Source: Mytilus edulis (lineage: Eukaryota). Taken from it: 64,000 bases of DNA. The notes beneath the pieces are model-generated. The model did no database searches, was not told the origin of the DNA, and was given only the letters and a program-made list of their open reading frames with translations. The stretch spans positions 74,586,001 through 74,650,000 of the forward strand of contig NC_092356.1 in assembly GCF_963676685.1 (NCBI RefSeq), written 5' to 3'. The stretch's first letter is position 1. Every line of letters starts with the position of its first letter. A program made the position numbers and the translations under genes. This document shows positions 9,301-60,302 of this stretch, piece by piece.

Positions 9301-12073
9301 CAAAGCAAATCAGTGATTGTGATTAAGTATGGTGACCCAAGCTGTTTATTTCCGTGTCATTTAATTTCTTGTGATTTGTCCCATTTAAGCAATCATTACC
9401 ACATCTTCTTTTATGTGCATACATATAGTTTGTCCATTATAGTTCTAGTCATTAAAATGTTAGCTGAATTTGCAATGTGATGAAAGCAAAATATAAAATT
9501 GAGAAAGGAAATGGTGAATATGTCAAAGCGACAACCACCCGACCATAGAGCAAACAACAGCCGAAGGCAACCAATGGGTCTTCAATGTAGCGAGAATTCC
9601 CGCACCCGTAGGTGTCCTTCAGCTGGCCCCTAAAATATGCATAATAGTACAGTGATAATGGACGTCATACTAAACTCCGAATTATACACAAGAAACTAAA
9701 ATTTAAAATCATACAAGACTAACAAAGGCCAGAGGCTCCTGACTTGGGACAGGCGCAAAATTGCGGCGGGGTTAAACATGTTTATGAGATCTCAACCCTC
9801 CCCCTATACCTCTAGCCAATGTAGAAAAGTAAAAGAATAACAATACGCACATTAAAATTCAGTTCAAGAGAAGTCCGAGTCTGATGTCAAAAGATGTAAC
9901 AAAAGAACATAAATAAAATGACAATAATACATAAATAACAACAGACTACTAGCAGTTAACTGACATGCCAGCTCCAGACCTCAATTAAACTGATTGAAAG
10001 ATTATGTCTTCATCATATGAATATCAGGTACAATCCCTCCCGTTAGGGGTTTAGTATCATACTATCATAAAATATATGAGAAGAACATAACCCGTGTCAT
10101 GCCAACAACTGTTATTTTTTTAAAGAAATAAATGTGTTTAGTTCCGATGCAAAGACCCTATCAGTGAATCAATGTTAAAGCCAAAATATGCAATCTTTAA
10201 TGACCTGACAACAGTATCGTAACTATATCCCCTTTTAATAAGTCTATTTAAAGGTTTTGTTAGTTTCTGAGGAGAATACTGACATTTTTGTGCTTTATAA
10301 AGAATATTTCCATAAAATTTTGGATGTGAAATACCTGAACGTATAAGATGTCTGCATGTTGAGTTATATTTACGAATTATTTCCTTATACCGGTGATAAA
10401 ATTTAGTAAATGTTTTGACCAGTTTGTGATATCGAAAACCCTGGTGTAATAATTTTTCAGTAATACATAAATTTCTCTCGCTAAAATCTAATACATTGTT
10501 ACATACACGAGCGAATCGTACAAGTTGAGATATATAAACACCATAAGATGGTGACAAGGGAACGTCACCATCTAAAAATGGATAATTAACAGTAGGAAAT
10601 GAAAAATCATCTCTTTTATCATAAATTTTTGTATTAAGCTTCCCGTTTATGATATAGATATCAAGATCGAGGAAAGGGCAGTGGTCATTGTTATCATTAG
10701 CTTTATTTAAAGTAAGTTCTACAGGATAAATTTCTTTAGTATACATACTGAAGTCGTCATTATTTATGTATAGTTTTATAAACAATCAGTCAGATAAACA
10801 ATACATCGGGGATCAAAGCAGTTAATTATATATATGCTCCCTTAACATTTAAAAAAAAAAATATTTTGAACAATGACTGGCTTATTTTCCAATCAAAAAG
10901 AATGGGGGAGGCGAACTTGATATTTGGATGACAGATTGGACACTTATTTTTTGTTCAGTTGTCACGTTTTTCAGTTTTGTATGGGTTTTTTTCAAGTACG
11001 TGTTGTTGTTGTTTTTTTTTTTTGTTTTTTTTTTTTGGGGAGGGGGGGGGTCTTCTCACTGAAACATTTAGAGGTAGATCTAGAATTTCTTCAAACTGCA
11101 AGGGGCACACTTTTTGTTGACGTTTCAAAGTTTATAAGCCTGACTGTGACAAATTCTACCTAAAGATAAGGGTTGGCAAAATCTATATAACTATTTTGAT
11201 CAATAAATTTATGTTCATTAACTCTTAGCAGTTCACTCGATCCAGCATATTTAAAAGTGAAACAGTAAAAACAGAAAAGTGAAACGGTAAAATTAGAGAC
11301 ACATTATATGTATATGTCTCTGGTAAAAAACAATGAGTCTACGGATCCAATAGAAAGTATGACAAGATTGAGTTGTCTTTCTTTTTCCATCGATTTTCAA
11401 ATTAGCTGAAAAGCAGTTCAACAGAAAACCAGCCATGTGTATGGTCAAGGACGATTGAAGATGTCAAGAAAAAGCACGCACACAAAGCATGTTGTAAATA
11501 TAAAATAGGTATAATACAGTGTTTTAAATTACCTTCATGGTCACAAATGGCTTGTACGTTGATGCTGTGGAACCCCTTTCGGTTAACAAATGCTGGTTCA
11601 TCAATGCTAGGCCCAGTAATCCGTATGTGAGTCCCATCAATGCATCCAACCACGTTTGGAAAACCAGCCTTTTCATAAAACCCAGCCCTTATTACGTTCT
11701 TCCTCTGATTATCTGGCCACGATATGAAATCATCTTTCATGGCAACTAATGAATCCGTCACACGGTTAATCACCCGAGATACAGTTGATTTGTCAAATCC
11801 CATTGTGTCCCCAACTACTTGCAAGTGTGATCCACTTCCATAAAATCTCAAGGCAATCATAATCTGTTGTTCCACTGAAAGGGCTGTCTCCTTGTTTGTC
11901 CCACGCTCAAGATCCCCTCTCATTAAATCTGACAGGTATGCAATAGTCTCCCTGCCAAATCTATATCTCTGCCTTAGCTCCTCATCAGAAAATTCCCTTT
12001 CTAGAGGGTCAAAACCGCGAAAATGTCGCTCTCTTCTTACAACAGGTGGTTGAAACAAAACATTGACAGCCAT
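6358..12073 (-). CDS. Harbinger (HARBI1-like) DDE transposase; exons 12073-11533, 9236-8947, 6552-6358; 341 aa
   Basis: Catalytic motifs GCIDGTHI (D), LGDSGYP (D), [12 protein letters not shown] (E), plus [23 protein letters not shown] and [14 protein letters not shown] splice sites in phase (G|GT, then phase 0) give 1026 nt uninterrupted. Confidence 0.93.
6690..7826. mobile_element. Non-autonomous Helentron/HINE-like element with central ~146-bp tandem repeats, in transposase intron 2
   Basis: AACAAG at one end; about 6 units marked by ACCATGAAAATGAGGTCAAGG; (CCG)n microsatellite; terminal hairpin GTCGAGC-TTT-CTGCAAC-AAAA-GTTGCAG-GCTCGAC followed by an A-run. Confidence 0.75.
7955..8400 (-). 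mobile_element. SINE, probably with a Deu/Nin-like central domain; 5' boundary approximate
   Basis: Minus-strand tail ...ATATTTGCCACTGGACGTTAAGCAACCAACAACCAACC. The segment TTCTTAACGTGC...GGATTCAACGTCCACATTCTGA resembles the Deu/Nin domain as recalled. Confidence 0.5.
9727..9817 (-). ncRNA. Twister ribozyme, P5-type permutation, core intact
   Basis: GGCUAGAGG-UAUA-GGGG-GAGGG-[UUGAGAUCUCAUAAACAUGUU]-UAA-CCCC-GCC-GCAAUUUUGC-GCCUG-UCCCAAGU-CAGG-AG-CCUCUGGCC. Matches the twister core (UAA, P2, GCC, P4 with UCCCAAG loop, GAGGG). Predicted cut between 9774 and 9773. Confidence 0.8.
10013..10079 (-). promoter_or_regulatory. Type II eukaryotic SECIS element
   Basis: Minus strand: helix I UCAUAU/AUAUGA; core AUGAU...UGAU; 11-bp helix II AGUAUGAUACU/GGGAUUGUACC (2 mismatches); apical AAA; mini-stem CCC/GGG. 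About 60 nt after the RT stop codon. Confidence 0.8.
10138..10766 (-). pseudogene. Reverse transcriptase C-terminal (RT motifs 6-7/thumb) fragment of the Penelope-like element
   Basis: EIYPVELTL...CPFLDLDI...[10 protein letters not shown]...[15 protein letters not shown]...KLLHQGF. The fragment starts just after the position expected for YxDD, so it is truncated. The frame is open to TAA at 10138. Confidence 0.88.
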
Positions 12074-12084
12074 CTTAGATTGAG

Positions 12085-12252
12085 GTTAATCAACTGATTA
12101 AAATTTAATCACCCTCAATGAGGTCGATTAAATATAACGACACTTTGACATTTTTAAACGACTCGTTAAATTTAACGACAAGTTGAACAACATGATAATG
12201 GACTGATTAAATTTAACGCAGTGATTAGTAAAATTTAACGACTCGTTTAATT
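12085..12252. repeat. Right subterminal repeats of the Harbinger
   Basis: Repeated TTAAATTTAACGAC / AACGACTCGTT / AATCAACTGATT motifs, including a partial second TIR copy at ~12172-12190. Confidence 0.75.
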
Positions 12253-12674
12253 TAACGACAAGTTGAACAACAGACCCCAGGTGTCTGCTGGCATTGAATT
12301 GGATACCAGTTTTATGTAGGCGTAACAATTCATCACATTTATCCAATCAGCTGTCTTGTGTGCGATCTCATAAGGTCCACATAGTTTAGTTTTTATGCCC
12401 CACCTACGATAGTAGAGGGGCATTATGTTTTCTGGTATGTGCGTCCGTTCGTTGTACCGTCTGTACCGCTTCAGGTTTTCCAAATAAGAGATTGTACCCC
12501 AATTTCACGTTCCACTGAACATAGAAAATTATAGTGCGAGTGGAGCATTCGTGTACTGAGGAAACATTCTTGTTTATACATGTTATGGTAGCGATAAAAA
12601 ATATTCGTGCAGAATATACATATACTATGAAACAAACAATATCCTGTCCTGTGCATATGTCGTGTACAAGTTGC

Positions 12675-13833: not shown

Positions 13834-14687
13834 TATTTTTAATACTTAATATAAAACCATGTTAAAATTCTTTAAATATTCATTTATTTTTGCTTCTAAT
13901 TTATTTCTAACTCAACCCAGTAATTCTGTTTGCAATTATGATAAAAAGTGGCAAAACAAAACTAAATATTGTATGACGGCAGATCGTAAAGTTACTTTAG
14001 CCTATCATATGTGAACTATAAATTGTAAATCTATATACCCGAATAGTAAATCAGCCATATCTTTTTATGTCAGGATTCAGTGTATAAAACAATGGATTGC
14101 AATATTGCAATACAATAAGAACAAATATTTGTTCGCATAAATTTAGGGTGCCAGCATGTCCAATTAAAATACTGATACGTAACAAAATTTCAGTAGTTTT
14201 GATACCTCATGCTGACTTGTACAACAAAATTATTTGACCGCATTGACCAAAACTGACCATATGTGCACTTTAATTTTTAAATCTTTATACCCGCATCGTA
14301 AATCAGCCATATCTTTTGTGTCAGGATTCAATGTACAATACAATGGATAGCAATATTGCAATATAATAAGAACAGATTTTTGTTCACATAAATTTAGGGT
14401 GCAAGCATGTCCTAAATACCCAAAATACTGATACGTAACACAATTTCAGTAGTTTTGATACGTCATGCTGACTTGTACAACAAAATTATTAGACCGCATT
14501 GACCAAAACTGACCATATGTGCACTTTAATTTGGAAATCTATATACCTGCATAGTAAATCAGCCATATTTTCTATGTCAGGATTCAATGTATAATACAAT
14601 GGACAGCAATATTGCAATATAATGAGAACAAAATTTTGTTCGCCAAAAATTTAGGGTGCCAGCATGTCCTCTTTTTTCTCCAAAATC

Positions 14688-17174
14688 CAGATGGGTGCGG
14701 TCCTAACCTTGACAAAAGTTAACTTAGAGTTAACTTGTTGACTGCTTTCTGAGTTAACTTGAGAATATTTAAGCAGTCAAGCAAGTTAACTTCCTCGTTG
14801 GTGGACCAGACCTACGGTCTGCTTTTTTAGGACCGCTGCAGACCTATCGACAAGTCTGCTTTTAACCAGTCCTGAGGACAGGTCTGCCCCAGACCAGACC
14901 TGTGGACAAGTCTGCTTTTGACCAGTGCTGAGGACAGGTCTGCCTCAGACCAGAACTGTGGATAGGTCTGCTCCTGACCAGACCTGAGGACAGGTCTACT
15001 TTTGACCAGACCTGTGGACAAGTCTGGTATTGACCAGACCTGAGGACAGGTCTGCTTATGACAGTATATCGTTATAATTGTCTTCATATCAGACTTGAAC
15101 ATGTTGAACTTTAATTAAAATACGGAAACAACATTCGCATTGTTTTTCCACAGATATCACTTATTATTTACTCGCTAGACTCTACTAGATATTATAAAAA
15201 TTCTCTTTTTTTTATTTGATATACATGTATTCTTAAATAAATAAAAAAAATGCCTATACAATTACATAGAGTGAGTTTTTTTTATTAGAAGGCGGATAGA
15301 AAGGTTGTCCAACGCTTCGGAGCAATATTCACGGGATATCAACAACATTGTCGACGTTGCTTCGTTCCCCGTTTTTTACCTGTCCCTTCCTTAATTTAAC
15401 TTTATGCCTAAATTTGTACATGCATGGATATTTCATTGTTATTCAACTTGTTTGCATTGAATTAGTATTCTATTTTCCGCAGAATATTCTAACAGAAATT
15501 GTACAGTGTCCGTAAGCATACGTTGTGGTAAAACTATCAACAATCTCATCAAATTCGTCAGATTGGTCAAGAGATTTGTCTTTGCCGATTAATTGAGATA
15601 TGGGAAGTCCCAGAATTATACTCAATGCGCACTTTAATGAAATGGTTGCCACTTGAGGTTTAACTATAAGCAAAATCAATCAACCGACATAATAGATAAG
15701 TAGTATACTATTCCCAGAAGAAAACCTTTTTTTATTTAATCATTGTATTAAATTAGGGTAGTATTTGCAAATGAATACACCTTAATATCGCTATTTGTCC
15801 GCCATTGTTGGATATCAGACAGGTTGTCGTAAAAATTTGGATGTCATCAAAAAAAATATCTGACGCCACAATGGAAAAGTGATTGTTGTATGCGTCAAAA
15901 GTTCAATCGGCTGGGTCAGCCGGGATTAGCTATAAGTTGTATTCAGACATGTCAGTGTTGGTACTTTGATGATGCCGCATAATAGTTTTGTATAACACAC
16001 CAACATGAACTACTATATATGATGTAACTGTTATTTTGAATAAAGAGATGAAATGCTGACACTCTCATTTTATGTGAAATTTTTTTTGCATTTATATAGT
16101 TTTCCAATATTATTGATTACATGTACATTTATGGTCCTACTAAAAACTTCTGATTTTAAAAAAATTGCTGATTAACTATTCAGGTATATAGACTTACAAT
16201 TTAAAGTTCACATATGGTCAGTTTTGGTCGATGCGGTCAAATAATTTTGTTGTAAAGTCAGCATGAGGTATCAAAACTACTGAAATTTTGTTACATATCA
16301 ATATTTTGAGTAAAAGGAGGACATGCTAGTATCCTAAATTTATGCGAACACAAATTTGTAGTCATGTGTGTAAATGAATTAAACTATTGCAGATTGTGAC
16401 TGCATAGTTCAAATATGTATTACTAATAAGGACGTATACAACTAACATCAACTATACTTCTTTCCAAAGATATACATGATCATACATAATAAAGTGCAAA
16501 TATTTTTGAATATGATAGGTAATGGAATATATATATATTCAGTGCCCGTTATCATTGTAGCCAAGATCGTTTTTATAATTGATAGATAGTCAGATCACAG
16601 ATCAATTTGTGTTACAAGCAACGTTTTATGCGTACTTAATTTTCAAATAATTCATTTTGTATTTAATACTGTTTATAAAAAGGAAGTATTAATTTTACTT
16701 TATTTTCGATGTTTACACTACAAAACAAAGATATTAAAAATATTTTTAAAAAATCGTATAAGCGGTCCTGGTTACAAGTTAACTTAGTGTTGAGCAGACC
16801 AGTCAAAAGTTAACTTGGGAACAGGTCTGGTTTTCATCGGATTTGTCAAAGCAAAAGTTAGCTTATGTTAACTTTGTGGCAGGACTGGTTTCGAAGTTAA
16901 CTTATGTTAACTTTATGACAGGACTGGTTCCGAAGTTAACTTTTGACAGGACTGGTTCGAAGTTAACTTATGTCAATAGCGGACCTGTTTCCAAGTTAAA
17001 TTTTTGGCAGACATAAAAACAGTCTGTGGACCAAGTCCCCTTTTCAAGTTAACTAGATTTTGGTCCCAGGACTGGTCAGAGCAGTCCTAATTTCGGTCAC
17101 AGGTTAACTTTGACCAGTCCAAATGGCTGATTATCAAATTAACTTGCTGTAAAGGTTAGGACTGCACTAATCTG
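14688..17174. mobile_element. Complete non-autonomous TIR element (CAGATGGGTGCRGTCCTAACCT termini, TA target; Tc1/mariner-like ends)
   Basis: Termini at 14688 and 17174 split a satellite monomer at CAAAA-TA-CTGATAC (left copy reads TC). AAGTTAACTT repeats near both ends; GACCAGACCTG(A/T)GGACAGGTCTGC repeats at 14830-15060. Confidence 0.8.
15773..15944. mobile_element. Small MITE
   Basis: GAATACACCTTA..ATCGCTA / TAGCTATAAGTTGTATTC inverted ends; absent from the paralog at ~27628. Confidence 0.55.
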
Positions 17175-17780
17175 TACTGATACATAACAAAATTTTAGTA
17201 GTTTTGATACCTCATGCTGACTTGTACAACAACATTATTTGACCGCATTGACCAAAACTGACCATATGTGCACTTTAATTTGTAAATTAATATACCCGCA
17301 TAGTAAATCAGCCATATTTTTTTATGTCAGGATTCAATGTATAATACAATGGACAGCAATATTGCAATATAATAAGAACAAGTTTTTGTTCGCATAAATT
17401 TAGGGTGCTAGCATGTCCTCTTTTTACTCAAAATACTGATACGTTACAAAATTTCAGTAGTTTTCATACCCCAAGCTGACTTGTACAACAAAATTATTTG
17501 ACCGCATTGACCAAAACTGACCATATGTGAACTTTAAATTGTCAATCTATATACCGGCATAGTTAATCAGCCATATTTTTAATGTTGGGATTCACTTATA
17601 ATTACAATCAACAGCAATATTGTAATATGATAAAAACAAATTTTTGTTCGCATGAATTTTATAGAATACCAGCATGTCCTTTTTTTATTCAAAATATTGA
17701 TACGTAACAAAATTTTAGTAGTTTCCATACCTCAAGCTGACTTGTATTACAAAATTATTTGACCGCATTGACCAAAACTG

Positions 17781-19896
17781 CCCGTACGGAAAAAAACATG
17801 ACACGTACTTCAGCCGGACAGTAGCCGTACTGTAGCCGTACTGAGAACTGTACTTATAATTATCATTTGGACTTTTCTTTGAATGTCTTATAATGGATAA
17901 CCCGACTGGACTTTCCGCGAAATTAGCCGTAAACCGGCTCGAAATATTTAAATTAGCAGGAGTCCGGTTCAGAAAGTCCAGCTGAACTTTCATAAAAGTA
18001 CGTCTCAAAAATTCCAGCCGGCATTTCTGGCAAACATTTGGCCTCTATAAAGTTCAACCGTACTTCTGTAAAGTCCAGCTGAACTCGCAAAAGTCCAGCT
18101 GGAGTTCAAAAAGTTCTGTTTGACCTTTAAAGATGATCTCAGCAGGGGCTGATCCACAAAAAATGGGTGGGGTCCACCCTGCAGAACCCTCCCTCTTGAT
18201 CCACTACTGCTTAGTTTTTCTTCAGATGGTGGATTCTACTGATTTGATATGAATCCCTTGTTACAATCGGAAAATTAAAAAAAAACAAGATGTCATTATG
18301 CATATACTGCTTATTTCTTTTTCTTTTTTCTTCTGTCTTACTGGCAAAATCAAGAAATGGAGAACTGTGAAGCAAAATGCTTACTCCTAAAAAGGTGTGG
18401 TTATAACCATCATGATTATATATTAAGACTAAATAAATTCAAAGTGCATAAAATAAAGTTAAGCTTTGAAAATCACTTAAACTAATTTGTTTTGCATAAT
18501 TAGTATTTAATGTAGTTTTTCTTTATTCTTTTTACTTTTCAAAAATAAGAATTAATTTATTAATTATTTCATCAATATGTTGAAGAAATAAGAGCATATC
18601 AGATAATATCACCAAAATGGTGGAATTCAATTACATTGTACTTACCAGAATATGCAATCCAAAATATATGCAAACAGCAATCTTCCTAAATTTTCCTTGA
18701 TGCCAGTCAGAAGGATCCTTCTTCCCTAATATAATGTGAAAAGAACTTCCAAACACTTGCTTTACATCCAATGTAAATTCCTCATTTTCATGATTTTGTT
18801 CAAGAAAGACACATCTTCCTGTTTATTCCAAATTCAAGTTTTGTTGTATTGCAATACATGAGGTTGTTTATTAGGAGCTGTGAAAATTTTTCTTGCATAT
18901 GTCTTAATTTTGAATATGTGATATATTGAAAAAAAAGAAAATCAATTATTAATTTGTTCGATTATGAAATGTTTAATAAACGTTATAGGAATTGCAGATA
19001 TAAGTATTTAGAAATGTGTTATCCTTTAAATGGCCTCATGATCAACCTCTGTGTAGATGCTACTTCCAGTGACCTGTCCAGACTGCGGTTGATTGAAAAT
19101 CGATGGCACTTTCTACAACACTACTGCTATTAAATCACTGTTATGGCTCAAATTTCTAATTGATATTATAGAATGATGATAATTATTTATTCTATGCATT
19201 CATCTTATTAAATATAAATATACCAGAAAATGTATAAATTCAACCTATTATTAGATGAAATTTTGCTAGGGATTTTATTTCATGAATATAGTAAAATGTT
19301 AAATAATTGTTGAAAACATATTAAGTGGGATATAATTCAATCAAAATTCAGTCACCTACATTAAATTTCAACTTTCCATTTGCAGTCTATGTTAAATATT
19401 TTATAATGGAATTGAAAATCTAGGGAAAAGATCTCATCTTATAGTGTAGTATATTGTAAAAAATATGATATCAATTTTATAACTTGCAAATTTTCATTTA
19501 TAACTCTTTTCCATTTTGAAAAAGATTGTTCTTTCAAAGAACAGAATCTTAAGTGGCAAAGTTTTTATTTCTGTAAGGACAGATTTGGCTGATGAAAATG
19601 TTCTAAGTCTAAATTCCTGCTCATAAATGACTGTAAAATTTTCTAAGACAAATATCCTGCAGATCATTCTACAGTAATTTTTTTTTTCAAAAGTCCAGCC
19701 ATCTTTTTTTTCTTGTCAGAATTACAAAAAGTGCAGTTAGTTGGACTTTTAAGAAAATACCGGCTGGCAAATTACTGAAGTATAAAAAAAAGTACGTGTA
19801 CGGATCATGTCAGACTGGACTTTTCAAAGTCAGACTGGGGTACGTCTCAAGTCCAGCTGAAGTCCAGTTGAAGTCCTGTTGAAATTTTCGTACGGT
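17781..19896. mobile_element. Non-autonomous CMC/EnSpm-like element (CCCGTACG termini, 2-bp TG TSD)
   Basis: CCCGTACGGAAAA at 17781 and TTTTCGTACGGT ending 19896. The satellite AAAAC-TG-ACCATA is split with TG on both sides. AGTCCAGCTG subterminal repeats at both ends. Confidence 0.75.
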
Positions 19897-21894
19897 TGAC
19901 CATAACAAAAGTGTTATCAAGCGTCTTAGTGATCGTCATTGTTCAGGACAAACTAGAATTAATGGTTGTTCTGTAGGTACTTAATGACAATTCCCTAATG
20001 ACAGCATTGCTGATTGTCAATTTTGAGAATTCAATTTGCCGAATAATTCGTACAATATAGAATTATAGTTTTCCAACCACTCGATCAACATTGGAATGGA
20101 AGTGACGACGCCCCTAAACGCACAAATGACGTTCACTAAATCCATAGTTTTTGACGGAAATGCATCGAACTCGAATGTTGTCTATTATATCCACACAGAC
20201 AAAAAACCTACTTGATCATTCAAATATTCACTATTTTTGTTTATCTTATTTTGAAAATATGTTTCAAAGGACAAGGTACGATAAGCTTTTGCAACTGTCC
20301 CCCTTTTATCGTTGAAATAAGAATGAATAATATCCAGGAAACAAGGCTATTACAAAAGTATAGTGTCTCATCTTACAACAAATCAATACAACTTTTCTTT
20401 TTACGTGTGTGAAAATTATTTAATACCCCTCTCATTCTCTTGAAAACCGTAAATTTTATGAAAATCAGAAGTGTTAGCGTCCGTTTTGTCAATTTTAACT
20501 ATAAGAGGACGCGAGTATCACGAAGATATTTCAATGTGTTGTTTGTTGTAAGAAAATAATATACTGTTTTAAATATATATGTGGTACGGGCGTCCGCTCA
20601 TGTTCAAAATTCAATAATTCAACACTGAAAATTCCTTGTTTAACGGGTAAGTCGATAATATGTGAACTTGTATTTCCAAATCTGCTCGAGTATCTTGTTT
20701 TAACTGAGGTAATCTTGATTGAGCTACAAAACTTTAATGCCAGGGAAAAAATATTTTCCGTTCTTTATCATGTTTATATAATTTTTGAAGTCGGGGGAAA
20801 GTAACATGTGATTTTGCAACATTTTTTCTAAAGTGACAATGTCAGTGTTGTCAATGAACAGCTAGCAAACTGTATATTTAACAAAATTAAATGAATGTAG
20901 ACCCTGTAAAATAATAACCCTTTTTATCCGTGTACAAACGTAAATGATATGCAACTGGAAATTGAAATCGATTTTAAGTGGAAACAAACTTAAAATCGAG
21001 ATTACCTCCCCTGTCAATGGATTTTTAAGGAAATTACTTGAAAAACATCTTTTTAAATAATTTTAAAGGTAAAAAATCTCCATTTATTAAATTAATGATC
21101 AATATTTTATTATTTAATATGTCTTTAAAAGAAATTCTGTGATATTTAAATGGTTTTGAAAATTTAATAAAGTGTATGCAACTGTTGTCAACCTTTGGAA
21201 AAATACGTAGTCAAATAATATAAGACTAATTATTAATCCCAACAAGGCTGGATTTTCAAGATCCAAAGATACATTGCAGTTGAAGGCTTCATTGAATTTA
21301 AACGAACATGCATGCGTTTCCTCGTATATAAGCTGATCAGCTGTTACTCGCAAAAAGCTCACATTACAACATGATAGAATATTCATTTTATAAAAAATAC
21401 TATCTCTTCCGCGACTCTTTTATTCCATTTCATTGTATTTTTTTTTCACTTTTTCATTTTTAGCATCTTTTCTCTCTAAAAAAAATTGAAGAAGTAGCTA
21501 TATGTGACCTTAAATCCATAAAAGGGTAATATAAATAATACATTTGTAAAAGAAATAAGTTGTCTTTTTGACACATGCTTTCCCTAATCAGACCATTCCA
21601 ATGGTACACAATATATAACTTGTATTTTGTGTATCTTCTAAAGGGATGTAGAAAAGACTTGTCTTTACTTAAAAGAAGCACACAATGGACCTGTTAGATA
21701 ATACGTTTAGTGTCTTTTCTTGTTGTTTGGATGTACCAGTATCCGACCACGTCCACTTATTTTTATCAATCCGATGAGTTAGGCCTTTTTCAAATGATTT
21801 TGATAATTCGTTCTTATGTTTTACTGTTACACCACTGTCCAAGGTAAGAGTGAGGGTTGGGATCCCGCTAACATTTCAAACTCCGCCACATTCT

Positions 21895-46000: not shown

Positions 46001-48280
46001 TTCATTTAGACTTGAATTATCTCTTCCATCTTTGCAGCTACAATCATAAACAATGCGTATTGGCGTAGTAGATGATTCCTTGGCAACAGGATGATGCGGG
46101 ATATAGTGCACTGGTCGATCGGTAGGAAGTTTTGTTTCCTCAACCTTTTCAATAAAATGTCTTCTCTCCTGCTCCCTTATGATATCTCCATACATTTTTA
46201 ATAAATCGGGTTTGTTTGCTAAACGCCTAATAACGCTACTTGTCCTCTGTTTAACCAATTCCATGTTATGTGGTAGCGGAAGGAAATCTGGTTTCCATGG
46301 TAACTTAGCTGTGTACTTTCCATCTTCTAGTATTATAGACTTTTCTCCGTATTCTCGTACAACTTCCGACTGACTTTTAATGGTATCGCTTCCTGAAACC
46401 CCCAACGCTTCTAAGTTCCAAAACTTTTCCAAGTCGCAAACAACGGCTCTGTGATCAGTCAAAATATTCAACATTGCTGATTGTTTTGAACTACTTCCGT
46501 TTTTAGTTAGTACGGGTCCCGACAAGAGATAACCTATTTTCGACTTTACTGCGGTCGGTCCATTTCCTCTTATTATTTCGTCTTCAACTATTGACCAGTA
46601 ATAGTCTGCACCAATCAATAAAGATATGTTAAACTTGTCTTCTGCCCATATCGGATGTGCGAGTCGTAAACCACGTAAGTATGGCAGTGCTTTGATTTCC
46701 TTTTGTGATTTTGTCTGAATAGGAGCGGCAATTTTCAGTACTATTATTACTTCTATTTCTATTCTTTGATTATCAACTGTTTCAATAGCTATGTTTGCTT
46801 TATCAAGATGACGAACTTGTCCTTCGTTTCCTCCAAATCCCGATATTTCCAGTGCAATCTTTTCGGTGGATTCAATTCCTAGTTTTCTAGCTAAATCTTC
46901 AGTTATGAATGAGTTTTGTGCTCCCTCGTCAAGTAGAATATTTGTCATGATAGATCGATTTTCGGACCAAACTGGAGTTACGGCAGTTTTCAGTAAAACA
47001 TCTGTATGTGCAGTAACAGTAGAATGTAAGGATGTGGTTAGCTCCAGTGGCGTTTCCTCTACGGCGGTATGTGCGACGGTCTTTTGTGTACTATACTGGT
47101 TTTCGGTTAAGCTCTTTGGTTCTGTGTTATGTACTTGTACATGTATACTCGTGTGATGTCTCTTTCCGCACTGGCGGCACTTATTTTGTTCCCCTGGTTT
47201 TAGTTTGATTAATTAAACACCGTTAATTTAGTTTGTCTCTATTTTGACAATAAACGAAGCGGTCGGTAAAATTTATAAATCTTCATTACTTTGACCTGTA
47301 GATTGTACTGCGACCTGTACGCATACTTCCCTTTTAATTGCTGTTCGCAATGATTCGATGTTCCAGTCGTCGTTTCCGCGATCTCGGGTTGTGTTTTTTC
47401 GTACGTCGGACGGCAATTTATTGTATATAATAGGCGTAAGAATGGCTCCAAATGTACTCTCGTTTGTTCCTAGCGATTCTAATCCGCGTATGCTACACTC
47501 AATTCTGTCGGAAAAGTTTCTCAAACTGTCTGCGTTTGACCTCGGTGCGGGTAAATCAATTAAATTCTGAATATATGCGTTCGTGATTTTGTGGTTCTGA
47601 CCAAACCTCTCTCTCAGTATTGATACGGCTTGATAGTAATTTGCACTTATGAGTGGTAAACCGGCGATACATTGCGCGGCTATTCCCTGAATTTGATTTT
47701 GCAAATACGTAAATTTCTGCACGTCTGTTAATGTTTGGTTATCGTGTATTGCTGATTGATACGCATCCAAGAAAGGTTGCCAGTTTAACAAATTGCCATT
47801 AAAATATGGAAGATTCAATTTTGGTAGCTTGTGGTAGATGCTTGAATTTGTTGCGTTCATTGACGATCTGTATTGCATATCATTATTCTGCATGGGATGT
47901 GGAGTAGTACATGTAGATGTGGAGTTGATAAACACAAACTCTGCTGCATTTGGATTTAAGTTCTGATTAGAGCTAGTTTCATTTGATTTGTTTTTCTGTT
48001 TTGAATTTGATGAATTGCGTACTTTTGTCATAGTTCGTTCTATATCTAAAACATACCGATCTGAGTCTTCTATCTCTGCTTCCATGTTTTCCTCTGCAAT
48101 CTCCTCTAATATTTCATTATCAAGTTCCGAAAGAATATCCCTCTTTTTCTTCAAGGTTTCACATAGGCTTTCTATTTCGTCGCGTTGTGTTGTTTCTTTC
48201 TCTAATTCCTCTTCAATCTTTGAAATTAATCTCCATGCGGCTCCTCGATGGCCCACTCTAATGGCTTTCTTTTTCGTCAT
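43094..48280 (-). pseudogene. BEL/Pao gag-pol polyprotein broken by frameshifts and stops (Gag, protease, RT, RNase H, integrase in that order)
   Basis: KLPKLNLPYFNG (Gag/DUF1759-like), ILLDEGAQNSFIT (protease), DLEKAFLQ and LYVDN (RT), LHVFTDAS and LPKLELMGA (RNase H), H-H-C-C plus GVDFTG, SDNA and WERMIG (integrase). Confidence 0.93.
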
Positions 48281-48518: not shown

Positions 48519-48534
48519 GTTATATTTAACATTT

Positions 48535-48625
48535 CCATTAAAGTGCGAGGTTTGGCATGCCACAAAACCAGGTTCAACCCACCATTTTTTCTTTAAAAAT
48601 GTCCTGTACCAAGTCAGGAAAATGG
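48535..48625 (+). ncRNA. Twister-like ribozyme copy (family 3; paralog of 52967-53060)
   Basis: Near-identical to 52967-53060; lies just right of the BEL insertion site. Confidence 0.62.
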
Positions 48626-49277
48626 CCATTGTTATATCATAGTTCGTTTCTGTGTGTGTAACATGTTAACGTTATGTTTCCGTTGTGTCGTTTGTTTTCT
48701 CTTATATTTGAGTGTGATTTCACATTACTAAAAGACGTGTCACGGTACTTTTCTATCCCAAATTCATGTATTTGGTTTTGAAGTTATATTTGTTATTCTC
48801 ATCTTGAAAATAAAGGAAAGAGAAATAAACGAATGATAGCCATTCAAAGGTAACAAGTTAATAATATTTTTATACACCATACGCACGCTACATCCACACA
48901 AAACTATGCTCAGATGTAAAAAGTTTGAAAGCCATAATAACTACCATGTTGACGATCGTCGAGGACCAAAAGTTCCAAAAAGTTGTGAGGCCAGGGGTAT
49001 CCTTCTTGGACAAAACCATCGTTATTATCAAGAATAATTCATAGTTTTGCAAACAGTAAATTTAGTTGGATGGCTATTTAATAGATATACATATACATAG
49101 ATTTTGGTCCTATGGCTGGTCAGAGCAGTCCTAAATCCGGTCACTGGCTAACTTTGACAAGATCAAATGACTGGTTATCAAGTTAATTTGCTGTACAGGT
49201 TCGGACTGCACCCATCTGTATATTTGTATTGTAGTCCTGTCATGTAATATTGTCATGTTAATGTCTTAATCAACATT

Positions 49278-49369
49278 GCCATTCAAGCGAGAGGTTTGGC
49301 ATTTCACAAAATCAGGCTCAACCCACCATTTTTATTTCAAAATGCCTTGTACCCAGTCAGGGAAATGGC
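49278..49369 (+). ncRNA. Twister-like ribozyme copy (family 3), degenerate
   Basis: Paralog of 36936-37027 in the segmental duplication. Confidence 0.5.
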
Positions 49370-52300
49370 CAATATTATATTATTTTTTTCTGCGTGTGTT
49401 ACATTTTAATGTTGTGTTTCTATTTTGTCGTAGTTATCTTAGATTTGATGCGTTTCCCTCAGTTTTAGTTTCTAACCCGGCTTTGTTTTTTTGTCTATCG
49501 ATTGATGAATTTCGAACAGCGGTATACTGCTGTTGTCTTTATTTATAATACCGGGGTATTAAGATTGACAATATCTTTGATCAATGAATTTGAAACAAGA
49601 AAGGATACATTGTACATTACAATACGATAAGTAATTAAAATGAAATATAAAATTCCCCTTTAGAGAAATTAAAAATCAAACATTACATTCTTTTTCCGTT
49701 TTTGCTGTTCGAGAAATCATAAACGATAAATGGAAACAGTCTTTTTTTTTTATTTCAAAAAGAAAAAAAAGAATGGACACAATTATACCATGTAAACAAG
49801 GACCATTAATACGAATTAATTTTTAAAAATTTGTTTTAAAGAAAAATTATCTTCCACTAGAAGAGCGGACAGTTATTGCCTTTTTTATTAATATTTTATT
49901 AAGAATACTGACATTGTGAAACAAACAAAAAATAAATTAACATACGTATAGTCTCAGAATGGTGATGCCACATATCCTAGACTAATTTATGATACCCTTA
50001 TCACATAGTTTATGGTATTTTTAGAAACACAATTGAGTCTAATTAAACAGTGCACCAAATCTAGCAACTGATTACCCATAATTATGTTACTTATCAATAC
50101 AGTCCCGATGCAGAAATGCAGGCAGATATCTGAAGTAATCACAGATAACATGTGTACTGTATATATTCAGGACCATATCAATTCCATTTGACATTTAATA
50201 CATTTGTACATTTTTGAGCTCTTCAAACGTCAAGTTTCAAAGGATTTGATGACAACAAAATACTAACACTGTTATACAAAAATTGCACAAAATCCCTTCA
50301 TAGCATTCATATGCAGTTACGCTACACCTTCAATGAAAGTCAGTATAATGATTGTTCAAGATGAGTATCAACTCGTATGCCTATAATTGAAATAAGAATT
50401 TTCACTGTTATAAAATTTTAAAGAAGATTATGTATCACAATTCGCCATAATAATTGCTTTTGCAAATTTCCTCCTAATTCGTTCCAACATATCACAGTCC
50501 AGATTATTGTACAACCTATTGTTGATACAGAAAATATTCCTTTCGAACCATAATGCCTATGTGAATTAGCTGCTGAGTATAGCAAAGCATCTAGGCGACC
50601 AATCAGTTAGAATCAGGTCTCAATCATTCTTCACATAACAGAATTATGAATATAATACAATTGATAATTCATAGTAGACGGCCTGTAAACAACAAAATTA
50701 AAGTAGCCAACTTGATCTACAAAAAACATTTGGTCAAATTAGGGACTTTAACTTTTACAATCAAAATAGAGACAAACTAAATTAACGGTGTTTAATTAAT
50801 CAAACTAAAACCAGGCGAACAAAATAAATACTGAACTGCAGAAAAAAACAAACTCCGTCATACATCTATTTTTATTTTACTGTTTTTTGTATGATTTATT
50901 TATTCATATTTTATTACTTTTAAAGAGAAGCTACATGTTTGTATAAATGTTGAAACTCGATATCCAGTATTTTGTTTCATTGAGAGAATACAACACAATC
51001 CGCATACAACATAAAGAATAATTAATGCATACATATTTAAATGAACGAGTTGATATCCATTCAAAGTTTCCGTTTAAAGGTATGCAAATGTTATTTTTCA
51101 TAATATGCAAGGTAAGACATATTCGACTAAAAATAAATTAGTAGCTATGCTGAATCATCTATTTATAAACTTGCAATTGCCCGTTGTTGTGTTATTGTGG
51201 CAAATTCAAAAAAAGGCGAACATTCCTGCTCGTTCCTAATAATCTCGTTTTAAGAAGAAAATTGAGTTTTTGTAATCGAATATGGCTACAAGGATGTATA
51301 TAAACCTCACAAGACACCAACGTAAGAACACAAAACAAAACAAAACAAAACACAAAACAAAACAAAACAAAACATAATAATGTATAATGAAAAAAAGGAA
51401 AATGTTGGTAATATTCAAGATGCATAAGTTATCATACTATGTAGGTTGTTGCACCTTGTGTGCACATGTATTACTGGTGTAGTTATATTACTTATCTATG
51501 GAGTTAGATTCAATACACATTGAATTCCTACAGTAAAATTTTGGAAGTTATAGTTTATATTTTTTGTTTGACCTTTTACCCTATGTTTTGGGTTAAAGGC
51601 CAAACAAAACATATAAACTATAAAATCATTTTCAATCTGGCGTAGAGTAACGGTAAGTAGTAGATGCTGCTTTATGAACATGCATTACACTGAAATTAAA
51701 ATTACACAGTCAGTTCATAGCATACATCAGCAGACAAACAAACTATCCCAACATATGTTTGTTAGTATAATGATTGAATAAGATAAAGTATATTATGGTC
51801 AGTTTGACACTCCAATTTTATAAAAATAACAATTTATATTCAATTTGTTGTTTTCCAAAAGTGTGTATGGAGACTATAAACGTATTACTATTCATTTTGG
51901 ACCTCTCCTCCCAATTATTTCTTACAAGCGCCAGTCAAGACTATTGATTATATCATCCGGGAGATCAATCAATTAAAAACAGGTTCCAATTATTCATAAC
52001 AGTACTAATGTAATACAAGCGGGAACTCATTTACACAGTGGTTAAAAATCAATTTAATAGCTAAAGTTATAATATATGTAAGATTTAGTTTTTTTTTATT
52101 TTAACAAATGGAACATATATCAATTTGACAACTCAATGATTATTTTCACATTTGTTTGTTAGTTTACCTTCATGTAAGTATTGTTATTCAGACTATGTTC
52201 CTTAAAATGTGCTTACATCGCCTATGTAATTGTGAAAGAGGGAAACTAAACTTACCTGGACTTCTGTAATAAACTTAATCTGACAACAATTGCTACTATT

Positions 52301-52859
52301 TATTGATACTTATGTTTATTTAAATCCTATTTGATAGTTTTCTATGGTAAGAAAATTCTTCAGAAAGTGATTATTTTACATACGAGACTCGGTATTTAAA
52401 TCGATTATGTTATGAGTGCATGAGTGCATGATAGATACCCACGGATGTAGTGGACAACAAGATCACATGTTGTTACTACCCTAGTTTGAATACATGATAC
52501 TGTATAAATAACTCAACTCTGACCTTGTCAAATATAATAGTCTTAGTGGTGTACATTATACTGCACCTGATGTTCATTAACAAACTGTAATTCTCATCAG
52601 TGATTTTCCAGATCGGCACTTAAAGTTAACCTCTGAGGAACGTTAACCAACTCGGGTAGTTATTAGTTATTCATCGTTAATTGATGATGCCACCGATGTA
52701 AATAAAAACATGTTTGTCAAATTCAAAGCACAGTAATTAATAGTGAGGAATCATTTGTTTTTGCTTCAAATTAAAAAAGAAATGAAATTGAAATTGAATT
52801 GAATTGAGCTATGTACAATATAACAGCAATTACATTAATCACTGTCTTGGCCTGATGCC

Positions 52860-53410
52860 TTTTATTATCTATTATTCTTGTGTTTCTTTGTCGAATACGT
52901 TCTCCTATTTATTTGTATTGTAGTCCTGTAATGTTATGTTGTCATTTTAATGTTAAATTTAACATTGCCATTAAAGTGCGAGGTTTGGCATGCCACAAAA
53001 CCAGGTTCAACCCACCATTTTTTTCTTTAAAAATGTCCTGTACCAAGTCAGGAAAATGGCCATTGTTATATCATAGTTCGTTTCTGTGTGTGTAACATTT
53101 TAACGTTGTGTTTCCGTTGTGTCGTTTGTTTTCTCTTATATTTGAGTGTGAATTCACATTACTAAAAGACGTGTCACGGTACTGTTCTATCCCAAATTCA
53201 TGTATTTGGTTTTGATGTTATATTTGTTATTCTCATCGGATTTTGTCTAATGCTTAGCCTGTTTCTTTGTGTGTTACATTTTAATGTTGTGTCGTTGTTC
53301 TCCTCTTATATTTCATGCGTTTCCCTCAGTTTTAGCTTTTTATCCCGAATTTGCTTTTTGTCAATAGATTTAAAAGTGTTGAACAGCGGTATACTACTGT
53401 TGCCTTCATT
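52860..53410 (+). mobile_element. Short twister-bearing retroelement (family 3)
   Basis: Other copies at 36880-37200, 42600-42696 + 48519-48803 (split by BEL) and 49220-49545. Common 3' end GAACAGCGGTATACTRCTGTTGCCTT. Confidence 0.7.
52967..53060 (+). ncRNA. Twister-like ribozyme copy (repeat family 3)
   Basis: GCCAUU-AAAGUGC-GAGGU-UUGGCAUGCCACAAAACCAGGUU-CAA-CCC-ACC-AUUUUU..AAAAAU-GUCCUG-UACCAAGU-CAGGA-A-AAUGGC. Compensatory changes relative to family 1; P2 imperfect. Confidence 0.65.
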
Positions 53411-53879
53411 TTGGACCATGCTAAATTAATTTTACATGCATACTTGGTAACACTATGTAGATATTGTTTTACTTATAGTTAATGTTCAAATAAGACTCAT
53501 ATGGGATACATATATATCAGATCAATATACTTGAATAATGTGGATTCAACAGTTGTAATCCATTCGTTTTTTATGTGTTTTGTCACGTGATTTTGTGATG
53601 TTATTAGGGACTTTCCGATTTTATTTTCCACTGAGTTCAGTATTTTTGTGATTTTCCTTTTTCATACAGGATCATACAGTTAACGATTTTATACGAAAAA
53701 AAATCGTACGAAAGTTTATACTTCAATACTGTTTCTCAGTAATCAACTTGTATCGATCGCTCAATGTTGCCATGTCACATCGTTTTTCAATGAACGATAA
53801 CAAGTTCTGGCCACATTAGTTTTAACTCGGATATGGAAAAGCTGTGAATTCCCAAACATTGTCACTTGCAGTATAAGAG

Positions 53880-56740
53880 ACAATATCCCTAATGCGCCTT
53901 GAAATGAGGAACTCAAAATTCACGTGTAAACAAACACATTCTGTGAGTGATATTGGACATGTTTCTATAATAAACAAGTGTCTGAGCTTAACCATTTGTG
54001 TTAATTTAGAAAGTAGGGGAACACATAATAAATGTGTAAAATCTGTGTAGCTATTAAATGTGTCAAAGTATTTAATTTTCAAAATTTAAAAAGAACGTAT
54101 TGTGTAATAAATGGGATTGTTTACCATGAGGAGCCGCATCACAAAAGGATACCCCGAAAATTTGACCACATATGTTAAAATGTCTCAGCAGTGAAACAAG
54201 CCATCAAAATTAACGATATGGACTGAGCAACAGACGAAAACGTTACCATTACCGCCTATGGATAAACTATTACGCATCTTCACCCAATTTAAAAGATAAA
54301 TTTCAGAAGTTTTCAGACTGATCTATGAATGATATCATCTTGTACACTACAAAAAAATTGTAAAAATCATGCTTTTAAAATGCATTACTGGCACGGAGCT
54401 GAACACTTTTTTAGGCACAATCATAATTAGATATAGGAAGATGTGGTGTGAGTGCCAATGAGACAACTCTCCATCCAAATAACAATTTAAAAATTAAACC
54501 ATTATAGGTTAAAGTACGGCCTTCAATAACTTTGTTAACCCTCGAAATATCCGAAAGGAATTTAATTTGTTTACTATATTGAAAAAGGCAAGAAATAACT
54601 TTAGAATATTTTTAAATTGTAAGTAAATATGACACCATATTGTCTTTGTTATGTAAATATCACTCTGGTCTACAAGAATACCTGATAATCAAGGGAGATA
54701 ACACACTTCATACGAGTAAAGTGAGATCCATCATCACATGTGCTTTTATCGAATGATTTGACCCCTGGTCAATAGATACCATATGCAAATCAACAGAAAA
54801 AAACATTAACATGTATTAAGAAAATCATGAATTATTTTTTTAATGCACTCGAGCAAAACTAAACATATTGTCATTTCTCAGTGAAAAGGGGGAGGGTCAA
54901 ACCTTTTTGAAAACAATATTTCTGCACCTATTCAACTATTAAGCTAGTTAACTACTACTCCTTTCTTCTAATATAAAAGGTTTAAATGAAGGTGGCTAAG
55001 CCACAAGGGAGAAGCATTTGTCTTTCTTTCGTATAAAATTTTATGACGTCAGACACACAAATCAATGAATGTGTTTGTATATAGATGTTTTTGTTTTCTG
55101 TGAAATTGTTCCTTTTAAAATTGATATACGATGATGACTGATGTAACAATATTCTGACTATTTTATTTATTGTGTCTGTTTAGTTAACGCATCAATGTAA
55201 ATGTAACGGAATTTGATGAGACTGTCATCAAAGTGAGAATGTTAGCGCTATAAACATGATAAAAACTGGTTTAATCCATCATTTTCTACATTTGAAAATG
55301 CCTGTACCAAGTTTTTTTTTGTCATATTTCAGTTCCAGACATATCATTACTTTTTAATCTGAGATGGCAAACTAGAGGTTTTAAAAAGTACTGAATAACA
55401 GGTAAACATTATGTTTTATTAGGCAAGCTCTAAATTATTTATTTATGGTATTTATGCAATTGAAATTAAAGTATGTATGTTAAAAATATGCTAATATGAA
55501 AACTGTTGCTACGGTCTTGATATTATATGAAAATGATTGGTTACTGATCTTTTCGACTCAATATTTCGTGTTTAATTTTGCAGCAACTGTTTCACACGTT
55601 ACACTACAAACTATATTAAGCACTATTTTGATCTGTATTTAATGACGCCATAAAACATGTGATGTCACAATGTTTCCTTTAAAACCTCATATGGATTTCT
55701 TACTGATAAAAGGTTTTCACTGAATTACATGTAAAAACCATGTTTTGTCTCAAATAGAATTATGTGAAAGGACAAGTTTTGAAAATTTACACTTCATTGC
55801 ACTCTAATTATATGATAAGAATGACTTGTCCAGTAGTTTAGAGTGGTTACCAAAGTATTAGATACCAGATTTTCACTAGTAAGAATAATTATTTTGGTGT
55901 TGTATTTTTTATGAAATCTTCATGTTTGCATAATTTCTCTGTCAACATGCACTTTTAGGCACGAAAAAAAATTATAGGATGCTTTAACAGGGTCGGTGTA
56001 TTGTAATTTAAGTTTATCATCAGAAGTTTCGTCCTTGTTTTGACTAGTGAAGATAAACTGGAAGAAATTAATTATACATACACATTGTATTCAAAATAAA
56101 TGAATATGGCGACAAAAATGTCATTGCCTTATAGTGCTTAAACAACTTAATTTTTTTTTTAGAAATGGACAAAAATACACAGATTTGTTAAACATGTTAT
56201 ACCGATGAAGATCACATAAAAATGTTTGGAAAAATCAGAACAATGGATTTCAATATGGGACAATATCCCTAATGCGCCTTGAAATGAGGAACTCAAAAGT
56301 CACGTGTAAACAAAAAATCTCTGTGTAGTGATATTGGACATGTGTCTATGATAAACAAGTGACTGAGCTTAACCATTTGTGTTAATTTGGTAAGTAGGGA
56401 CACAGAATAAATGTGTAAAATCTATGAAGCTATGAAATGTGTGTAAGTACTAAATTATAATCCTGGTACCTTTGATAACTTTTTAAAGTATTAAATTTTC
56501 AAAGAACTTATTGTGTTAAAAATGGTTTTTTTTTACCATGAGTAGCCTCATCACAAATTAATAGTCGGGGTTTGCTGATTTACCGGAAAAGAAATCTCAC
56601 TTCATACCCCGAAAATTTGACCACATATGTGAAAATGTCTCAGCTTCGAAACGAGCCGTCACACATATCCAAGTTAACGATATGGACTGAGCAACATACC
56701 ATTCCCGTCTATGGAGAAACTTATACGCATCTTGACCCAT
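53880..56740. repeat. ~400-bp dispersed direct repeat (53880-54290 and 56260-56740)
   Basis: Both copies start CAATATCCCTAATGCGCCTTGAAATGAGGAACTCAAAA. Confidence 0.85.
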
Positions 56741-59247: not shown

Positions 59248-59395
59248 AAGGAGCGGATCCAGCCATTTAAAAAAGGGGTTGTTACTAACCCAGGACAAAG
59301 GGGGGTTCCAATTACATGTACCCATTCAAATGCCTTGATCGTCCAAAAAAAAGGGGGGTTCAAACCCCCAGACCCCCCCCCTGGATCCGCGCCTG
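59248..59395. mobile_element. Small MITE with (C)AGG.GCGGATCCAG termini
   Basis: AAGGAGCGGATCCAG / CTGGATCCGCGCCTG; flanks AGGCT / AGGCC. Related relic at 18143-18209. Confidence 0.6.
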
Positions 59396-59934
59396 AGGCC
59401 ATACATTGACCTATAATGGTTTAGTGCGTTATACATGTATGACTTTGTAATGCTTATTGTGTTTATGGAAAACAATGGGAAAATGTTGCTTAACATCTTG
59501 GGATATATATTTAGAAGGCATTTATTCAAAAGCAGATATAATTGATTTGTAGAAAAACATGAATAAGGGCAGATGATCAACCATTATAGTACAAGTCTTT
59601 GATAAACCACAATATATTTGTCATCACTGACGTATCAATGTTGCTTTTGTATACATGGTATAAAAATCCAACTTGGGTTTCTCATCTAAACTTGTTTACA
59701 TCGTGTTACATTATCCAATATAGCTAGGCCTGTTATAGGTTTTTCATTATCACACTTATGGGGAACTGATTTTGCTCATTGGTGAAGGATGTACAGTTAC
59801 TAACAATTACATCACTTCACTTGAAGTTCCTATATCGTTCAATTTTCATCCATGGAGATCCCTGTCTTGGTTTACGGTTGATGGTTGTCTTATTGAAATT
59901 CATACCACATCTCCTTATTCTGGTTATCATACAG

Positions 59935-60302
59935 TATACATGTTATACCAATGTCCCAGGTTAGGGGGAGGGTTGGGAACTCGCTAACATGTTTAACCCC
60001 ACCACATTATTTATGTATGTACCTGTCCCAAGTCAGTAGCCTGTAATTCAGTGGTTGTCATTTGTTTATGTGTTACATATATTTGTTTTTTGTTCATTTT
60101 TTTACATAAATAAGGCCTTTAGGTTTCTCGTATGAATTGTTTTACATTGTCTTATCAGGGCCTTTTATAGCTGACTATGTGATATGGGCTTTGCTCATTG
60201 TTGAAGGCCGTACGGTTACCTATAATTGTTAATTTTTGTGTCATTTTTGGTCTTTTGTGGATAGTTGTCTCATTGGCAATCATACCACATCTTCTTTTTT
60301 AT
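59935..60302 (+). mobile_element. Short twister-bearing retroelement (family 2)
   Basis: Ends in GTTGTCTCATTGGCAATCATACCACATCTTCTTTTTTAT; homologous to 35606-35988. Confidence 0.75.
59957..60043 (+). ncRNA. Twister ribozyme copy (repeat family 2)
   Basis: CAGGUU-AGGGG-GAGGG-UUGGGAACUCGCUAACAUGUU-UAA-CCCC-ACC-...-ACCUGUCCCAAGUCAGU-AGCCUG. Confidence 0.7.

Follow-up and report, generated by a model that had tools for sequence, protein, structure and literature searches.

A permuted, twister-like candidate ribozyme in the 3′ untranslated regions of Naiad retroelements in Mytilus edulis

Penelope-like elements (PLEs) are the retroelements closest to telomerase, and their replication is poorly understood. 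We know of no proven role for the hammerhead ribozymes associated with them. Another class, the twister ribozymes of Rfam clan CL00120, reportedly includes a circularly permuted form called type P5, which is said to have been described by Roth et al. in 2014. Here we consider a stretch of 64,000 nucleotides (nt) of the Mytilus edulis genome (assembly GCF_963676685.1, contig NC_092356.1, positions 74,586,001 to 74,650,000; hereafter the window) wherein a module resembling a type P5 twister is found repeatedly. Most carriers of this module belong to Naiad, a clade of PLEs, and the module is located in their 3′ untranslated regions (UTRs).

The published twister layout consists of P1, UAA, P2, GC, P3, P4, the loop GUCCCAAGC, GUAAA, P2′, GAGGG and P1′ (PMC8501958). 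T-variant twisters are found at the 5′ end of Perere-3, a long interspersed nuclear element (LINE) of the RTE clade in Schistosoma mansoni (PMC8501958), and truncated twisters are found at the 5′ end of RTE elements (PMC7761336). The hammerheads of PLEs include mini-hammerheads with a palindromic helix III whose cleavage takes place in the dimeric form (Cervera & de la Pena 2014; Lunse et al. 2017; via PMC6765202). For the Naiad clade, Craig et al. 2021 give as diagnostics a CxC motif and DKA in place of DKG, together with a GIY-YIG domain located N-terminal to the reverse transcriptase (PMC8557442). They report that Naiads are without canonical hammerheads, do not mention twister, and read the apparent lack of a ribozyme in these hugely successful elements as a hint that such ribozymes may be dispensable parasites (PMC8557442). 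Our literature search, which left most subscription journals outside its range, found nothing linking twister to PLEs, retrozymes, short interspersed nuclear elements (SINEs) or molluscs, and a paper from November 2026 cites solely the earlier links between twister and retrotransposons.

Representatives of the module are grouped here into families A to G. In family A, the RNA carries in order P5a, UAUA, P2b (GGGG), GAGGG, a first palindrome (Pal1, UGAGAUCUCA), UAA, a second palindrome (Pal2, AACAUGUU), U/AA with the slash at the predicted cut, P2a (CCCC), GC, P3, P4 and P5b. P4 is CCUG-UCCCAAGU-CAGG, followed by an A and then P5b, and the P1 region between GAGGG and U/AA is 21 nt long. Every core element of the published twister layout is present, circularly permuted to open at P5 in the order of type P5. 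The first-pass annotation of the window had recognized the twister core from UAA, the L4 sequence UCCCAAG and GAGGG, and this recognition is sound. The core nucleotides (in order UAA, P2, GC, P4 with the loop (G)UCCCAAG(C), an A-rich joiner, P2′ and GAGGG) are complete in families A and B. The core of families C to G carries three changes, in which UAA becomes CAA, GAGGG becomes GAGGU and UCCC becomes UACC.

The module includes two pseudoknots, T1 and T2, which were parsed in 128 distinct copies, some taken from this genome and others from metagenome contigs. T1 is formed as GGG/CCC in 19 copies and, with both sides changed, as GGU/ACC in 99. The pseudoknot covariation claimed by the first-pass annotation therefore stands for these forms, but not for one young Naiad subfamily that it overlooked (5 of the 128 copies), in which GAGGG is combined with UACC and T1 (GGG/ACC) contains a G.A mismatch. 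T2 is paired in all 128 copies, either as AC/GU (105), as GC/GU with one G.U pair (16), as AU/GU (5) or as GU/GU (2). P5 has four unrelated sequences among the families, all of which are able to pair, and the same is true of P3, in agreement with the earlier claims that the closing stem covaries and that the P3 hairpin is variable yet paired. P2 forms all four pairs in families A and B and three of three in some C and G copies, and the pair adjoining the cut site is G-C or A-U. In the family A copy at 9727-9817(-), P2 is paired at 4/4 positions, T1 at 3/3 and T2 at 2/2.

Compared with type P5 twisters, the module shares the core elements and their order, the two pseudoknots, the predicted U/A cut adjoining P2 and the open end at P5. 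It differs in that P1 is not a hairpin but two self-complementary segments separated by YAA, T1 is often GGU/ACC, P2 has just 2-4 base pairs, and the Rfam models score none of the copies. Whereas T2 of canonical twisters pairs GC with GC, L4 here ends in U rather than C, and the change from GC to AC in L2 matches this change. The twisters of RTE elements resemble the module in their location within a retroelement, in having GAGGG followed by UUGG-like bases, and in a P1 that is poor or externally supplied. However, those twisters are of type P1 and lie at a LINE's 5′ end, where they free the element RNA from an upstream transcript, whereas the module here is of type P5 and is located in the 3′ UTR of a PLE, about 200-270 nt before its 3′ end.

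Covariation was assessed with 94 hits, drawn from several organisms, of a covariance model (R1) trained on 29 module copies, with 500 shuffles and slid pairing partners as controls. The paired cells amount to 83.7% versus 73.0% in the shuffles, none of which reaches the observed value, and the covariation score is 0.307 versus 0.134 for shuffled and at most 0.083 for slid partners. Two reservations apply to these values, namely that alignment was done by fitting to the model and that copies share descent. T1 is paired in 96% of cases, and its third pair is UA in 73 hits and GC in 14. A smaller set of 51 hits gave similar numbers.

An R1 scan of the window yields seven full copies (77-122 bits), two truncated copies and one weak extra match. 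Reading of the sequence and the R1 scan agree on all the full copies listed in the first-pass annotation, which are at 9727-9817(-), 35873-35959(-), 59957-60043(+), 36936-37027, 48535-48625, 49278-49369 and 52967-53060, and also on its truncated copies at ~21845-21890 and ~55220-55312. The flanks were described there as largely unrelated, and indeed alignment between families is restricted to the 86-90 nt module. There are 15,274 + 10,669 matches (about 26,000) to the exact core pattern GAGGK..YAAYCC..CYTGTMCCMAGTCAG in the 1.37 Gb genome, whereas the same pattern reversed, as a control for chance, has 0 + 0 matches. Because nested GAGG sequences cause some A-type copies to be counted twice, the true exact-core number is somewhat below ~26,000, and decayed copies fall outside this count. 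Two of the Naiad families are very young, with 93-99% identity among copies, and a first look gave 44,844 and 56,201 candidates for them genome-wide.

The motif is also found on at least 120 metagenome contigs, including new families with new P5, Pal1 and Pal2 sequences. These contigs are presumably host DNA of other invertebrates. There are 15 metagenome sites at which a Naiad C-terminus is located 160-680 nt upstream of the motif on the same strand. Examples are L110, with a nearly full open reading frame (ORF) at 74% identity, L085 at 67% and L096 at 40%.

In the window, the association with Naiad is most apparent for family A. A Naiad protein matches 10773-10330(-) by tblastn (40% identity, E 5e-32) within a 215-amino acid (aa) open frame at 10138-10785(-), which is the C-terminal part of a Naiad reverse-transcriptase protein and has no Pfam match. 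The stop of this frame is ~320 nt upstream of the ribozyme. Between the two, ~200 nt upstream of the ribozyme, is a selenocysteine insertion sequence (SECIS)-like element at 10014-10078(-), which scores 30.9 bits with the Rfam model SECIS_1 (E 9e-4), under the gathering score of 35. The same element at locus L020 scores 41.4 bits, above gathering, and among the families SECIS was detected in family A alone. The segment 10766-9488(-) is 99% identical to a 4,031-bp tandem unit at L068, and its sequence marks it as a young, 5′-truncated insertion of 1.28 kb from a selenoprotein-type Naiad, wherein the ORF C-terminus, SECIS-like element, twister and tail are retained. There is no full-length PLE within the window.

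Longer copies are found elsewhere in the genome. At L068, two family A ribozymes are exactly 4,031 bp apart, and a frame aligns to Naiad aa 145-1051 with 37% identity (E 5e-180). This alignment, and not a reading of the CxC and DKA motifs, places L068 in Naiad. The frame contains four in-frame TGA codons and a terminal TAA. Head-to-tail tandems of this 4,031-bp period are frequent, with ribozyme spacings of 4,030-4,033 bp at many genomic neighbours. Many family A copies also have an identical 480-aa frame that starts just past an in-frame TGA, as seen in L068.

At L062, the family D/E element bears one unbroken frame of 1053 aa, which includes a GIY-YIG domain near its N-terminus (aa 179-269) and the motifs TCDCSH (CxC), PADKAS (DKA) and YIDDVL. 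Its ribozyme is located ~1 kb past the stop and ~190 nt before the 3′ end, and a truncated tail is present directly upstream of the ORF. Ribozymes of families C and C′ are found downstream of Naiad C-termini with 56-59% identity (L030, L026). Including these, ribozymes follow Naiad C-termini on the 3′ side at a distance of ~300 nt to 1 kb, both in the window and at L010, L012, L020, L026, L030, L062 and L065-L068. The Naiad families carrying the module have proteins that are 37-59% identical and UTRs that can no longer be aligned. The Penelope-like carrier proposed in the first-pass annotation is thus upheld by the linkage to Naiad ORFs and by the GIY-YIG, CxC and DKA features. These features are shared with the published Naiad clade (PMC8557442), as are the very high copy number in bivalves, the selenoprotein versions with SECIS past the stop and the partial tandems.

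The carriers are not the four short retroelement families that had been supposed. Families A, C and D/E correspond to 3′ UTRs from different ~4-kb elements of the Naiad clade, mostly present as 5′-truncated copies, and the idea of several non-autonomous partners fails for them but may hold for family B. Family B, with a length of ~385 bp, lacks any remnant of an ORF and has the ribozyme at its start. Partial tandems of it are present (L064, L043), and no regular tandem arrays were seen. It looks like a non-autonomous short derivative and is the only family of that kind. In being short and non-coding, and in carrying a PLE ribozyme and forming partial tandems, it resembles the animal retrozymes classed as non-LTR (LTR, long terminal repeat) (PMC7229834; bioRxiv 10.64898/2026.07.22.740005). 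Retrozymes have hammerheads, regular tandem arrays and circular RNAs, whereas family B is known here from its sequence and partial tandems.

The abundance of short copies would also be expected if the carriers were tRNA-derived SINEs and the module were a SINE-type conserved core or an internal RNA polymerase III (pol III) promoter, with GGTTCAACCC serving as a B-box-like sequence. The GGTTCAA(C/T)CC of families C to E resembles the pol III B-box consensus. However, families A and B have ATGTTTAACCCC at the B-box-like place, neither an A box nor a tRNA-like head was seen, the block is located 0.3-1 kb past long ORFs in ~4-kb elements, and the short copies are 5′ truncations. We reject this reading as highly improbable, given the missing B-box-like bases in families A and B and the ORFs borne by the carriers. 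The module is real and very abundant, and on structural grounds it is a well-supported variant of twister that forms part of Naiad retroelements.

Canonical PLEs with a C-terminal endonuclease were inspected at ~25 loci, and no such twister is present in the 1.5 kb downstream of them. The B-type twister 1.8 kb downstream of one canonical PLE ORF (L064) belongs to a separate element, as shown by the 3,177-bp tandem period of that PLE. The hammerheads expected in canonical PLEs were not found at the Rfam gathering score, and for this reason the contrast with hammerheads rests on the literature. A type I hammerhead that reaches the gathering score (34.5 bits) is found at L020:2106-2149(-) (G000:C1), on the strand opposite a Naiad tail, and so both ribozyme classes coexist in this genome.

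In the P1 region, from GAGGK to the cut site, the usual P1 hairpin is replaced by Pal1, then YAA, then Pal2. Pal1 takes the form of a perfect palindrome in every family of this genome, with a sequence that differs from one family to the next (UGAGAUCUCA, GGGAUCCC, UGGCAUGCCA, UAGCGCUA, UAGCUAGCUA or GGCGCGCC). Family G, which outnumbers the other metagenome families, has GGCGCU as Pal1, and this sequence can pair with itself solely when G.U wobble pairs are allowed. The central adjacent pair of Pal1 is complementary in 33 of 35 sequences, though it is unable to form in a hairpin. There are four covarying self-complementary forms of Pal2, which are AACAUGUU, AACUAGUU, AACC-A-GGUU and AAUC-U-GAUU. 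Some D/E copies have a clean internal deletion of Pal1 and Pal2 that fuses GAGG to the YAA-P2 part (G000:C1:4122336, 5287289, 14006657 and 11852753).

One could suppose that these palindromes work at the DNA level as protein-binding or recombination sites, and that the likeness to twister is incidental, given that Pal1 in the families of this genome is a perfect DNA palindrome similar to a restriction site. However, the GGCGCU of the commonest metagenome family is self-complementary only as RNA, because it requires wobble pairs. Furthermore, the reversed pattern gives no hits, and five further helices and pseudoknots covary. We therefore give a DNA-level role almost no credence.

Since the P1 hairpin is replaced by the self-complementary Pal1 and Pal2, two copies would have to pair for P1 to form. 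In the main families, the homodimer computed for the P1 region reaches -12 to -19 kcal/mol, and for whole ribozymes the computed dimer is favoured by 7.6-17 kcal/mol. More speculatively, P1 may thus be formed by the pairing of two ribozyme copies through Pal1 and Pal2, by analogy with the dimeric mini-hammerheads of PLEs. Those hammerheads share with the module the class of host element, the 3′ or pseudo-LTR location, the tandem arrangement and, in place of a closing helix, a palindrome suggestive of dimers. They differ in being another ribozyme class, and in that dimer action was shown for them and would be only presumed here. The module may also work as a monomer, because cleavage in vitro persists in twisters whose P1 is poor or missing (PMC8501958).

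The reading that we favour, with a probability of roughly 0.65, is that the module is a circularly permuted (type P5) self-cleaving ribozyme of the twister class and a conserved part of the Naiad 3′ UTR. In the selenoprotein-type family A, the order of elements is the ORF stop, SECIS, the ribozyme and a tail of 190-270 nt. The RNA is predicted to cut itself at Y/AA adjoining P2, such as at 9774/9773 in the window. A transcript that extended across tandem or partly tandem copies would then be trimmed to unit length with 5′-OH and cyclic-phosphate ends, which is the job proposed for the hammerheads of other PLEs. In such a unit RNA, the ORF and SECIS would be kept together upstream of the cut. 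Perhaps circularization and rolling-circle reverse transcription are the source of the constant-period arrays, although this is speculation. Both self-cleavage and a role equivalent to that of the hammerhead are inferred here from sequence features.

Several observations weigh against this reading, in addition to the T1 mismatch mentioned above. P2 is paired at only 2/3 positions in families D and E and in most G copies, and at 1/3 in the commonest C subfamily, which has nevertheless been amplified. There is no intramolecular P1, and the monomer folding energy of this region is about 0 (0 to -1 kcal/mol in the main families). The Rfam twister models, with which the first-pass annotation had expected the module to be checked, give no match at gathering score in the whole window or at 19 loci. 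Permissive Rfam scans produce one partial twister-P1 match of 12.9 bits (E 9; gathering 67.2). In every family, pairing is possible between GGKUU, composed of the last bases of GAGGK plus UU, and AAYCC, composed of the AA at the cut site plus P2a, as in 9796-9800 with 9769-9773(-). This helix is found in minimum-energy folds and is incompatible with the twister fold, and it may represent an off state. Lastly, there is no enrichment of copies beginning precisely at the predicted cut site, with 32 versus 55 at a control position 10 nt downstream. A clustering of truncations at the cut site that had been seen at first look among 100 listed copies was dropped in light of this controlled count.

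Such observations can also be accommodated by a twister descendant that no longer cuts and is retained as a folded 3′-UTR element, either for recognition or priming by the Naiad reverse transcriptase or for RNA dimerization or packaging through the palindromes. In this case, a weak or broken P2 in abundant subfamilies, the missing P1, the failure of the Rfam models and the lack of enrichment of copy 5′ ends at the cut site would be unsurprising, and the strong palindromes would favour dimer formation as such. However, the nucleotides needed solely for catalysis and for the double pseudoknot (Y-A-A, GAGG, the loop CCAAG, T1 and T2) are fixed or covarying across diverged Naiad families, and a plain binding hairpin would have no need of them. 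A non-cutting descendant is therefore rather unlikely in our judgement.

A bolder version of the self-cleaving reading, which is conceivable but doubtful, is that Naiads swapped the PLE hammerhead for an obligate-dimer twister, such that the ribozyme is an essential yet interchangeable component of PLE replication rather than a passenger. The dimer would cut, and the unit RNA would be ligated into a circle that serves as a rolling-circle template for reverse transcription, which in this scheme would give rise to the 4,031-bp tandem arrays. The two paired copies might be neighbouring units of one tandem transcript or parts of two separate RNAs, and both would be cut.

The individual copies in the window illustrate the range of these features. 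The family A ribozyme at 9727-9817(-) has an R1 span of 9715-9829 and a score of 99.5 bits. There are two full copies of family B, each at the 5′ end of its element. The first is located at 35858-35974(-) in a ~385-bp non-coding element (35598-35978), scores 80.6 bits, has a predicted cut at 35922/35921 and carries GAUGG where GAGGG is expected. The second is located at 59942-60058(+) in a ~375-bp element (59937-60311), scores 77.1 bits, has a predicted cut at 59994/59995 and shows a weakened P4 (CAGU). A B-like 5′ half that has lost P3 onward is found at 21824-21934(+) with 20.4 bits. A degenerate family B copy, absent from the first-pass annotation, occupies 29963-30329(-), with 16.7 bits (E 0.04) at 30198-30329 and 77% identity to the 3′ part of B at 29963-30140.

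There are four family C ribozymes in the window, all on the forward strand. The copy at 36923-37040 (97.1 bits, predicted cut 36977/36978), in an element fragment at 36876-37204, has GAGGU paired with UACC and CGG as P2b. The copy at 48521-48639 (114.2 bits, predicted cut 48575/48576) belongs to the UGC subfamily and has P2 paired at 1/3 positions. A decayed copy with UACCCAGU as L4 is located at 49265-49382 (91.9 bits, predicted cut 49319/49320), and the highest-scoring copy, at 52954-53073 (122.2 bits, predicted cut 53008/53009), is part of a 559-bp Naiad-tail fragment (52853-53411). A segment of 114 nt at 53549-53662, ~490 nt past this last ribozyme, is 84% identical to the segment directly after the ribozyme in the D/E Naiad tail. 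This likeness could be due to module exchange between families or to an adjacent truncated insertion.

Family D/E is represented by a 3′-truncated fragment of a Naiad 3′ UTR at 55030-55312(+), with a ribozyme match at 55211-55329 (33.3 bits) that ends within loop L4, with a run of T after it. A 40-nt tandem repeat at G000:C1:6000970-6001128(+) has a unit whose bounds are exactly the predicted cut site (AAUCC...) and the end of L4 (...CCAAGU), and the 3′-truncated window copy 55211-55312 stops at the same L4 position as this unit.

The window also contains other repeats and mobile elements. A BEL/Pao LTR retrotransposon at 43797-48280(-) encodes DUF1759, DUF1758/aspartyl protease, Peptidase_A17 and integrase zinc-binding domains. 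Direct repeats of 300 nt lie on either side of it (40619-40918 and 50898-51197; 97% identical, 10.3 kb apart) and are probably its LTRs, and the twister copies at 48521-48639 and 49265-49382 fall within the span between them. A 223-aa frame at 11402-12073(-), just upstream of the truncated Naiad and unrelated to it, matches DDE_Tnp_4 (Harbinger/PIF-type transposase). Satellite-like tandem arrays with a ~259-bp unit and 60-90% identity between units are located at 32650-35610, 1270-1940, 14000-14730 and, in opposite orientation, 17140-17790. Other tandem repeats are present at 39400-40215 (~169 bp), at 14804-15100 and 25347-25531 (28 bp) and at 6871-7452 (~147 bp).

The presence of this motif in Naiads matters because the clade was reported to be without the ribozyme borne by other PLEs. 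If the equivalent place in Naiads is indeed occupied by a twister, then the recruitment of two unrelated ribozyme classes to one position would argue that self-cleavage is needed. The two groups of elements would then be a natural pair of systems for asking what the cut is for. Current Rfam models would also be missing twister-like sequences by the tens of thousands in each genome, and among natural twisters there would be one without a P1 hairpin that may act as a dimer.

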